Assembly (NCBI RefSeq): GCF_041956535.1
Contig: NW_027192191.1
Span: 1,506,087-1,570,086, forward strand
From: Calcarisporiella thermophila CBS 279.70
Taxonomy: Eukaryota; Fungi; Calcarisporiellomycota
DNA length: 64,000 bases
Reading direction: 5' to 3'
Of the stretch, positions 2,422-7,240 are shown in pieces (position 1 is the stretch's first letter; each line of letters begins with the position of its first letter). The position numbers were made by a program, and so were the translations under genes. Below the pieces are notes generated by a model. That model was not told where the DNA came from. It saw only the letters and a program-made list of their open reading frames with translations, and did no database searches.

Positions 2422-5002
2422 ATGCGAACGAATTACGGCCCTCATATGACAAGAGTATCTTGGATAGCGTTTTTTTGCCTTGGGACTGTTTCCGGCTCGC
2501 TCTTGAAGAGACAGCGCAATGAGACTCTACAGGTGGCACCGCTCCCGACGATAGTCGACTCCATCAGCGCGCCCTCATTCAACTTCACCGATCCCTATGC
2601 CTTGTATCCTATCCCGACCCCGGTTCAAACCCCGTATGATCAATACACAAGACTGCTGGGCGACTCATTGCTGTTCTACGAGATGCAGCGAAGCGGGAAA
2701 CTAGTCAACAACCGGATACCCTGGTGAGTGTTGCGTGATGCCGAGGGCTCTTTGGGTCGAGATTCTCACTCCCCTCCCTCCTCTCCCCTTTGTCCCATGC
2801 TTTCCTCCCTCCCTCCCTCCCCACCGTAGGAGACACGACTCTGGACTTGCAGACGGCGCTGATAACCGCGTTGATCTTGTGGGCGGATATTATGATGCGG
2901 GGGACTGTATGTGCTTCCTACAGCTTATTAGGCAGAGCTCTCGCATGTTTAACCGAAAAGATTGATGTCTCTAAATTTTTAGACGTGAAGGCCACGTTTC
3001 CGCTCTCATTCACACTTAATCTGATCAACTGGGGAGCATTAGAGTATTTTCAAGGCTATGTTTTGGCGGACCAGGCGGGGAATCTGAAAGACATGGTGAA
3101 GTGGGTAAGTCATTTGTCGCCGAGGTTAGTGTTTGAAGAAACGCCCCTTCATTTCTCTTCTGGGGGGCGTGCAGGGGACAGATTGGCTCATCAAGGCACA
3201 CAACGCGAACAACTCGCTCTATGTGCAAGTCGGAGATGGCTGGATAGATAACAACTATTGGGGTAAGGGTGGAGGGGAGGAGATTGTGCTGCTGGTTTTA
3301 ACAAGGGTCTAATCCTCCCTTTCGCCTGTGAAAGGACCTGATACAAATATCCCATCGCCGCGTCGTTCGTTCCGAGTCGATCCGCTGCACCCGGGGACGG
3401 ATGTGGCGGCGGAGACCGCCGCGGCGTTTGCCTCCTCTTCGCTACTTTTCCGCCGCCATTTCTCCAGCCCGGACTACGCAGCCCTATTGCTTCAGCACTC
3501 CAAGGAGCTTTTCCAGTTCGCCATGACGCCGCCGCTGCGGCGCTACAGCCAGGACCGGCATTTTCTGTACTCCAGCTCCGGCTTCGGAGATGAGCTCCTG
3601 TGGTCTGCCTTGTGGATGTACCGAGCCACGCGCAACGAGACCTATTTCGAGTTGGCGCGCGAGTTCTTGGACACCTATGGGCTGGGGGATGCCGTGTTGC
3701 CTGTGGACTGGGATTCCAAGCATGGGGCGGCCTATGTGCTCGGGGCGGCCTTGAGCTCGGGGCTGGATGGGCTGCCCGTGCTTGCCGATGCACCCCAGTG
3801 GAGGGCCCTAGCGGAGAGCTATTTGGATCGGCTCGTGGATGGGGTGTTTGGAACGCGAACACCAGATGGTCTCTTCTGGTTTGATGGATCAAGGTAGCCT
3901 ATTTACTGGAGAGGGGGGGGGGAGGGGAAGACCGAGGAATGACCGCAGCTAACCCTGATTCCCACGATTTTGCATTGTAGTGAGAACAATTCTCTGCCTG
4001 TGTCGCAGGCTACCTCCTTGCTCTGTTTCCTCTATAGCTCCACCACTCTCAGGGCGCACCCCCTGGGCAAGATCTCCAACTCTACCGTCGCCATCAAAGC
4101 AGCCAAATACGAGGAATTTGCAACCAAGCAACTAGGTGAGGATCTGAGGCGATTCGTGGTATGCATAGCGGGGATGGGACCGTTGACAGAACTTTCTTTT
4201 CTTTTTTTTATATTCTTCGATCCTAAAAGAATACCTCTTGGGGAACAACAGCGCCGGTCGTGTATACGTGGTCGGCGAGCACCCGTCGTCTCCAAAGAAT
4301 CCTCACCATGCGGGAGCCCATGGGGGCACCCATATTCATGATCTGATGAACCCTGCGCTGACCACCAACGTGCTTTTAGGAGGTGAGGAGCCCAATCACC
4401 TAAGAAAATCTCCCCGCTCTACTCTCTCTGACCCCTCCCCCCCCCTCTTGCTCTTTTAGCTGTGGTGGCTGGGCCCGATCGTATGGATTCCTTTATTGAC
4501 GATCGAAGAATATGGACGCAAACCGAGGTATGCCCGAGCTTTTATTTTTGGTTCAGAGTGGGCCGCCTCCTCACAGCGGCTCTTTGTATAAAAAAAATGA
4601 TAGCCTGCCCTCGATTATAATGCCCCATTTCAGTGCAATGTTGCCCGACAAGTACTGTACGCCACCAAGCCTCCTCGATTCATTCGGCAACCGGTGGAGC
4701 CACCGTCTCTTCAGCCCACCTCCGGCTGGAGAAACGAGTACCTGTGCGCGATCCTGATACCTCTTCTGGTAGGTTTGCCGGCAATGGGAGCGTTCCTTTG
4801 GTGGTGGCAACGGAGAAGACGAGAGCGGACGGGCAAGCATGAGGGAGAATTTAGGATGGGCGAGGTGAATGGCGAAATGCGTATACCCAAGGAGGAGCTG
4901 GTCGGCGGGAGCCCGGGGCCATCGGCATGTTCCACCCAGAATGATGAGGGCTCGGGCATGGAGAGTACGCTGGTGGAGGATGGCGACCGAGTTGTTAGCT
5001 AG
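2422..5002 (+). CDS. Glycoside hydrolase family 9 endoglucanase with signal peptide and C-terminal transmembrane helix (multi-exon)
   Basis: Spliced motifs [70 protein letters not shown]. Hydrophobic N-terminus from ATG 2446; TM segment [23 protein letters not shown] followed by RRRR. Confidence 0.93.
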
Positions 5003-5231
5003 TATTTATTCTCGAAACATTTCTAATGAATTTTAAGTTTAAGATCCCTCAACGTGAAGTCAGGTGACGCCTGCTAATAATTTAGCTCGATATTTTTTCC
5101 TCTTTTCTCACAAGTTCGAGGCTTTTTTTTCCTTTTCTCCTTTATCTCTCCCTCTGTTCTCCTCGGTTTACTCTGCAAATAAATTACCCAACTGTCTCCC
5201 ACCGCTTGCTTTAAACCCAGTATCAGACAAG

Positions 5232-5756
5232 ATGCCGCTCCAATTGAAGAATGGCGAAGAGCTTCTCGCCGGACATCCCCCTGCAAGTGAGCATTGTCAC
5301 ACATTTTACGGCTGGGCTCCCAGCCCTGGAATGGGATTCTCATGGGGAGGGGGAATGTTTCTCTTCTTGCTTTTGTAGACAAGATCGGCGGAATGCGCTG
5401 TGGCATGGCGAACCATGTACCCTTAAAGACGAGGTCAAGGTATGCATGTCCATTCTGACGCCACCGCCTGTCCTGCTGCTAACTGTGTGACTTTTGCACG
5501 CCTTTGTTCTGCCAGAGAGCAGACCAGCTCGCCCGATCATGCGAAGGAGGAGCAGGATGAGCGGGCCCTGCAACGCATCCACCAGGAGGCCGTGAAGCAG
5601 GAGCAACGGTCCCAGCTGATGGATCTCCAACGGCAGCAGCGGCAGCAGGCCTTGCACGACAAGCGCCAGCAGTCGCGTGGGGCGAAGAGCGTGCAGCAGC
5701 CCCGTTTGCACAACCACTTTGTATTGAGACCCAACCATATCCCGGAGAGCCTCTGA
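5232..5756 (+). CDS. DAP1: DAP (death-associated protein 1 / Dap1b) family small protein, 3 exons, 118 aa
   Basis: Exons 5232-5286, 5379-5439 and 5516-5756 (GT-AG) join in frame. The protein has AGHPPANKIGGMR (human DAP1 AGHPPAVKAGGMR) and SVQQPR (human HIQQPRK). Confidence 0.82.
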
Positions 5757-7240
5757 GCTAGAGGGAGGCTCTCGCTGGCGCTTGAGTTTGTTTTCTCTCG
5801 TTCTTCATCCCCCCAATATTTGTATAAAATCCCTTGAGGGCAAGCACATCTTTTCTGTCTTCTCTTTGTTTGCTTCTATCTTGACCCATATGTATGTGTA
5901 AGAACTTGTTGAATATGCTTATTCTCGTTTAGTGTACCGATTGAAAGTCAATTAAGTAAAAGGAGTGTAAATCCAGTGTATCCGGAAGGCGTACAATGGG
6001 GGAGGGGAGGCGAGCCAGGGGCCCTCCAGGCTGTGCCGGTGATAACGGGAAACGGGTGGACGGTATCACTACGTAATTTCCTGTGCTTCTTATTAGAGCA
6101 GGATGAGATAAGCGTGAGGGGGAGCCGCCACAGCCGAAAAAGGAGTGACACTGGCTGTGGTTTCAGACCTCTGCAGGCCCGGCGGGGGCGGGCAGTGATT
6201 GGCGGGCGACCCGCGGGTAATTTATTTCTCGCAAGGTTAATGCATTCTCCTTCTTCCGCGTCCTCGCCATGCTAAGCGATCAAGCCTGCGTCGGTTGACA
6301 AGATGTCCATCGCCGTGACGCACGATCACCGCCGCTGGGGGGGGGGGGGCTTTGCAGGGGGAGCAGAGTGGGCCACAAGCAAGGGCAAGGGCCGGCCGCA
6401 GCCGGCCCTGGATTTGCGGGGCGAGCTTCGGGCCACGCTGACTCACGCGCGCCTCAGCGGCACCAGCAGGGCCCGGCGGCATGATCCAGGGCCTTGCTGG
6501 AGGCGGGCTGCTGCGGGGTCTGGGTTGGGCGAGGCCGCGGGCGCTTGCCGTGTGGGCGGGGGGCGGCGGATGGGCTTCGCTCTTCCAAAAGCGTTGGCCA
6601 AATCGCCGCCAAACTCTCCGGAGCCGGCTGAGTGTGAAGCCAGGCAAACTCACCGGGCAGAGGGGAACGAGTAACGGCCTGTCGCGTGGTTTATTTAGAG
6701 TTTTTTTTTTTCCGCGCACTGGCCGTGTTGATTCGGCCCCAAACTTTTTTTTGTTCCTCGTTGGACAAGGAGGTGAGCGGTTTGCCTTTTTCTCTCACAC
6801 ACAAACGTTGCAGCGGCTCCCTCCCCTGTGCCTCCCGTGCTCTTTTATTTTGTGTTGTTCCCTGGCCCTCGCCTCTGCTCTCCCTCCCGGCGCCGCCTCA
6901 GCTGCTTGCTCCTTCTTCGTCTCTCTCATCCGGGCAGAGCATCCTTGACATGTCATCTGCTCTCTCGCTGTAATCGCCAGCCCACACGCCCTCAATCCCG
7001 CGAGATTACTAAAGCCGCATGCACTAACTGCACCCATCTCTGTAATTCGTATACCAATCCCATATATCTCTGCTGCTGTTAATTCTTGGATATCGCCGCA
7101 TATACTATTTAATCGCCGTCATTCGCACCCATTGTCATCCTCCCGTCGGCTTCTCCGGTCTATCTATCTCTCTCTCTCTGTTTGTCTAGCTGTCTGCCGG
7201 CCCACCCTCATACCTTGATACACACTCCTCTTTCGTTCGC

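Follow-up and report, generated by a model that had tools for sequence, protein, structure and literature searches.

A three-exon gene of the early-diverging fungus Calcarisporiella thermophila probably encodes a divergent DAP-family protein with a possible role on vacant ribosomes

A gene at positions 5232-5756 of the forward strand, within a 64,000-nucleotide window of the Calcarisporiella thermophila genome (the window being the whole stretch of DNA that was analysed), encodes a 118-residue protein that is likely, to judge from its sequence, to belong to the DAP1/DAPL1 (Dap/Dap1b) family as a highly divergent member. Our preferred reading, to which we give a probability of about 0.6, is that the gene is real, that its product is a divergent DAP protein and that this product would most likely bind vacant ribosomes and repress translation when nutrients run short or spores lie dormant. 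The parts of this reading differ in strength. That the gene is real is very probable, the homology is likely and, once homology is granted, a role as a ribosome-binding repressor, argued by analogy with animal proteins, falls a little short of an even chance.

Dap1b-type plugging of the ribosomal tunnel is shown, in the literature that we examined, only for animal proteins. A functional homologue in a fungus, if this is one, would make the hibernation mechanism older than the split between fungi and animals. That DAP proteins occur in early fungi is already known to databases, because Pfam tags some Mucoromycota proteins as DAP. What is probably new here is a divergent, sub-threshold and unusually shaped member of the family with two apparently unusual features, a helical linker and a tail. 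Calcarisporiella thermophila, a thermophile, belongs to the phylum Calcarisporiellomycota, and the sequence-only reading, which had been made from the DNA letters, was correct in assigning the gene to an early-diverging fungus.

Likeness to animal DAP proteins and a possible role on the ribosome

In fish and frog eggs, animal DAP/Dap1b plugs the ribosome tunnel (Leesch et al., bioRxiv 10.1101/2021.11.03.467131). According to the same study, animal DAP proteins are unstructured, contain 15% proline and carry two motifs, an N-terminal PAVKAGG[MK]R, which lies at the tunnel exit, crosslinked to eL31, and a C-terminal I[QH]QPR[KR]x. At the peptidyl-transferase centre of the egg ribosome structures, the two glutamines of IQQPR bond with 28S rRNA and with the eIF5A hypusine, and the chain of Dap1b terminates about five residues beyond the glutamine that touches this hypusine (bioRxiv 10.1101/2021.11.03.467131).

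For the Calcarisporiella protein, a counterpart of each motif had been claimed from the DNA alone, and both counterparts are there. Residues 14-25 read GHPPANKIGGMR, within which P17-A-N-K-I-G-G-M-R25 is identical to PAVKAGG[MK]R at seven of nine positions and is preceded by G14-H15, and VQQPR occupies residues 98-102. The segment AGHPPAxKxGGMR lies equally far from the N terminus in the two proteins (residues 13-25 here and 14-26 in Dap1b), and [IV]QQPR follows approximately 75 residues beyond the N-terminal motif in the fungal protein as in vertebrate DAP. The likeness to Dap1b/Dapl1 and DAP1 (PF15228; 7OYA, 7OYC and 7OYD) extends to size, with 118 residues here and about 100-113 in the vertebrate proteins, and to a net basic charge, the small fungal protein having 19 lysines and arginines against 13 aspartates and glutamates. 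Terminal parts that are disordered, by prediction in the fungus, are a further common feature.

The two differ in what lies between and behind the motifs. A single-sequence AlphaFold2 model of the fungal protein contains one helix, at residues 46-91, with pLDDT values of 86-96, and low-confidence tails on either side; outside this predicted helix the protein is, according to the model, largely disordered. The linker would accordingly be a 46-residue helix rich in glutamine, glutamate and arginine, whereas that of vertebrate DAP is a proline-rich coil, and proline makes up 7% of the fungal protein (8 of 118 residues) as opposed to 15%. After QQPR (99-102), a leucine takes the place of the basic residue found in vertebrates, and 15 more residues follow it, which gives a tail of 16 residues where the vertebrate proteins have 1-3. 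Given the long predicted helix and this tail, the geometry of the fungal protein can hardly equal that of Dap1b.

The N-terminal motif and QQPR, which the fungus shares with animals, are the segments that touch the ribosome in animals. Since only these ribosome-contacting segments appear to have been retained across the distance from fungus to animal, a conserved role in ribosome binding is suggested. The conserved activity would be binding to vacant ribosomes and repression of translation when nutrients are limiting or spores are dormant, and release from the ribosome might be brought about by proline-directed (TOR-type) phosphorylation. The candidate site for the latter is Ser44-Pro45, the one Ser-Pro in the protein, located 19 residues past the N-terminal motif, and the analogy is with Ser3 and Ser51 of human DAP1, which is described in a passage of PMC7161711 citing Koren et al. 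2010 as an mTORC1 substrate at these two residues. Membership of the family is no guarantee of this function, since the Dap of Drosophila fails to bind ribosomes from rabbit (bioRxiv 10.1101/2021.11.03.467131). The ribosome-hibernation role in spores or starvation that the sequence-only reading had proposed meets further obstacles in the residues that follow QQPR, in the near-zero contribution of the C-terminal motif to the Pfam score and in the long predicted helix of the linker.

The same homology evidence (Pfam, ESM-Atlas and the N-terminal PDB matches described below) would also serve a protein with the role of mammalian DAP1, that is, an autophagy suppressor that is phosphorylated by TOR and active when dephosphorylated in starvation, with no stable plugging of the tunnel. 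Such a role, which could coexist with ribosome binding and does not exclude it, seems to us rather unlikely as the explanation. It gains from the TOR connection, with DAP1 reported in that passage as an mTORC1 substrate at two serines and Ser44-Pro45 present in the fungal protein, and from the 16 residues past QQPR, given that Dap1b ends so soon after its hypusine-contacting glutamine. It is also consistent with the weak or absent ribosome binding of zebrafish and Drosophila Dap (bioRxiv 10.1101/2021.11.03.467131). However, the action of DAP1 in autophagy has no known molecular mechanism, and the segments that the fungal protein has in common with animals are only those that contact the ribosome. 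In addition, DAP1 has two proline-directed phosphosites and the fungus a single candidate; no Ser-Pro lies near its N terminus.

A more specific proposal can also be made, in which DAP is an ancestral dormancy factor of opisthokont ribosomes that early-diverging fungi kept and Dikarya lost, and which in Calcarisporiella became a modified, thermophile-adapted ribosome plug for spores or starvation, under TOR control. This proposal is speculative, and we consider it unlikely. In such a modified mode, QQPR would sit with eIF5A at the peptidyl-transferase centre, the 16-residue tail might extend into the tRNA-binding cleft, and the helix at 46-91, if rigid, could span or cap the tunnel.

Among factors of other kinds, the closest analogy of mechanism is with SNOR, an SBDS-like factor of S. 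pombe that, on dormant ribosomes, has its peptide tail in the exit tunnel and in contact with the eIF5A hypusine. The analogy ends there, as SNOR has a folded SBDS domain, enters from the side of the peptidyl-transferase centre and has no sequence relationship to the Calcarisporiella protein. The tails of Rei1 and Nog1 also occupy the tunnel or the peptidyl-transferase centre and are likewise comparable in mechanism only. In reviews and in the papers on SNOR, Dap1b is described as a factor of vertebrates or of animals, and among the papers that we searched in full text none deals with a DAP from a fungus.

Genes for other dormancy-related proteins were sought in the same genome with family profiles. 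The eIF-5a family was found above its cut-off at two loci (G000:C29:189365-189568 and G000:C8:1013093-1013296), and eIF5A, the hypusine-bearing partner of Dap1b, appears to be duplicated in Calcarisporiella. SBDS_N was found at three loci (G000:C19:459477-459674, C7:1067516-1067761 and C20:511552-511849), one of which should be Sdo1, with a SNOR-like dormancy factor perhaps among the others. Further matches (G000:C11:231149-231352, C23:337971-338105 and C3:73016-73240) were to Stm1_N, at two loci, and to Ccdc124/Lso2. The six-frame scan for HABP4_PAI-RBP1 (PF04774) gave no match, a result that is uninformative for a disordered protein split among exons. These eIF5A, Stm1, Lso2/Ccdc124 and SBDS-type genes, as identified from sequence, point only to a general dormancy toolkit in the genome.

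If the preferred reading is true, Calcarisporiella would offer a thermophilic microbe, whose stable ribosomes are suited to cryo-EM, for studies of the entry of such a factor into the tunnel, its release and its control by TOR. We regard the interest of the Calcarisporiella protein as moderate, and it would be higher if the fungal branch of the family binds ribosomes.

Probable kinship with the DAP family

The DAP kinship proposed by the sequence-only reading stood up in part. The full-length protein, for which we used the public product VTP21DRAFT_645 retrieved by a word search with exon 3, was compared with 24,736 Pfam models. DAP (PF15228) was the top family, at 22.2 bits and an E value of 2.8e-4, with residues 13-102 aligned to profile positions 2-98 of 98, which is end to end. 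The match is significant and is joined by matches to Dap1b/Dapl1 in the PDB and to DAP clusters in the ESM-Atlas, but its score lies below the Pfam gathering score of 27 bits, an operational cut-off and not a biological feature. The profile check that had been proposed for this family therefore came out borderline, with a low E value on the one side and, on the other, a cut-off that was not reached and no DAP match when the exons were scanned singly.

Dissection of the score by fragments locates the signal. Residues 1-45 by themselves scored 20 bits (E 1.3e-3) and matched no family other than DAP, and residues 1-90, from which VQQPR is absent, again scored 22.2 bits, while residues 46-118 gave no Pfam DAP match. 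Nearly all of the Pfam score is therefore due to the N-terminal motif, and the C-terminal motif adds approximately 0 bits. The N-terminal motif was also what the PDB search picked out. When residues 1-40 were compared by phmmer with 177,635 PDB sequences, only zebrafish Dap1b (7oya) and Xenopus Dapl1-B (7oyc) were matched, at E values of 0.5-0.9, through the residues AGHPPA-K-GG-R; the full-length protein and its C-terminal 39 residues (80-118) had no match in the PDB.

For the C-terminal motif we turned to composition. In composition-preserving shuffles of residues 25-118, [ILVM][QH]QPR arose at a rate of 0.46% and bare QQPR in 1.8%, the motif being set in a stretch rich in glutamine and arginine. 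The spacing and order of the motif are also as expected, and this appears to provide modest but independent support for DAP kinship.

A search of ESM-Atlas features, covering 7.7 million clusters, returned DAP-bearing clusters at all of ranks 1-12. At rank 1 was a 234-member, mostly Mucoromycota cluster (score 0.92, 208 of 256 features shared), 18% of which carries PF15228, and chordate DAPL1 and DAP1 came after it. Residues 46-118 alone brought up the same families at scores of 0.81-0.83, values that, being below 0.9 for a partial query, count as leads only. The Mucoromycota cluster, whose representative has 125 residues, is the nearest by features, similar in length, from early-diverging fungi and partly recognized as DAP by Pfam; however, phmmer with the Calcarisporiella protein reached none of its members at E <= 0.001, so it is a remote relative at best.

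Direct sequence searches brought back the protein itself. By phmmer against 1.84 billion representatives, the self-match was the only one at E <= 0.001, and VTP21DRAFT_645 was all that word-index protein searches retrieved, whether the query was exon 3 or the full protein. No candidate emerged when the genome was scanned in six frames with PF15228, a paralogue search in the same genome matched nothing but the gene's own three exons, a metagenome locus scan gave 599 pattern matches of which 0 were confirmed, and an exact-protein look-up across contigs had nothing on record.

It is conceivable that the protein is no DAP homologue and is instead a lineage-specific, charged, glutamine-rich helix with disordered tails that has come by two short DAP-like motifs through chance or convergence. 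Several of the above results are what one would then see, including the Pfam score under the gathering cut-off, to which the C-terminal motif contributes nothing, the lack of any sequence relative among the 1.84 billion representatives, the empty full-length PDB search with E values of 0.5-0.9 for the N-terminal part, and the partial-query ESM scores. The glutamine- and arginine-rich composition and a helical linker unlike that of animal DAP fit it as well. Against it, Pfam, the PDB and the ESM-Atlas are partly independent lines and converge on one family out of thousands. The order of the motifs, their spacing (98 profile positions against 90 residues) and the total size all agree with DAP, and the N-terminal motif retains its seven identities out of nine and the GH ahead of it, as in animals. 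We consider this explanation improbable, and slightly more so than the autophagy role. Taken together, the Pfam match, the N-terminal PDB matches, the shuffles of the C-terminal motif and the ESM-Atlas features make homology with the DAP family likely.

Structure of the gene and its surroundings

Reading of the sequence from 4900 to 6100 and exon-by-exon translation gave a product of 118 residues from three exons separated by two GT..AG introns on the forward strand. Exon 1 (5232-5286) begins with the ATG at 5232, which has an A at position -3, and comprises 18 codons, MPLQLKNGEELLAGHPPA (Met1-Ala18), and one base of codon 19; it ends within the N-terminal DAP motif, after AGHPPA. Intron 1 (5287-5378) is a phase 1 intron of 92 nt that runs from GTGAGC to TTGTAG. 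If the reading frame is followed from the ATG without splicing, it ends at an in-frame stop at 5376-5378, which coincides with the acceptor of intron 1. Exon 2 (5379-5439) completes the split codon (A/AC, asparagine, codon 19) and continues with KIGGMRCGMANHVPLKTRS and two bases of codon 39; its residues, 19-38, carry the second half of the N-terminal motif, GHPPA/NKIGGMR, which intron 1 interrupts. Intron 2 (5440-5515) is a phase 2 intron of 76 nt from GTATGC to TGCCAG with a branch-like CTAAC approximately 30 nt 5' of the acceptor. Other acceptors near 5516 were considered and rejected, no neighbouring AG being in frame. Exon 3 (5516-5756) completes codon 39 (AG/A, arginine) and adds 79 codons before the TGA at 5754-5756. 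It encodes residues 39-118, with the Ser44-Pro45 site, the predicted helix, VQQPR (window positions 5691-5705) and the 16-residue tail (5706-5753).

The exon translations equal, residue for residue, the public protein VTP21DRAFT_645, a 118-residue product of Calcarisporiella thermophila listed as uncharacterized in NCBI and UniRef, so the three-exon model put forward from the sequence alone is borne out. The same reading had called the gene hidden, and it is invisible in a view restricted to open reading frames, but it has already been annotated publicly, though without a name.

The composition of the exons sets them apart, with GC contents of 0.54-0.63 against 0.38-0.41 in the flanks (0.38 at 5003-5231) and a GC3 of 0.835 in exon 3. 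Codon usage was scored against a small reference, seven long open stretches taken from the window, which makes the score crude; for exon 3 the claimed frame came first by a small margin, with 0.25 bits per codon, exon 2 was neutral (approximately 0), and the tail after QQPR scored lower, at 0.125. This weak codon-usage support, together with GT dinucleotides in the tail that could act as donors, is what might suggest a spurious or unexpressed gene, or another 3' end that drops the tail after QQPR, but such an error is highly improbable given an independent public annotation with the identical product, canonical GT..AG at both introns, the contrast of exon 3 GC3 with the GC of the flanks and a family motif that is restored only by splicing, which would be unexpected of a spurious model.

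Directly upstream of the ATG, a pyrimidine-rich stretch that includes the putative 5' leader occupies 5090-5231 of the forward strand, with a long CT tract at 5090-5200. The upstream gene on the forward strand stops at 5002, approximately 230 nt before the ATG, and the interval available for promoter and leader is very compact. On the reverse strand, an open reading frame for 132 residues (5340-5738) overlaps exon 3; it is unlikely to be a gene, its leucine-rich sequence mirroring the CAG- and glutamine-rich coding strand.
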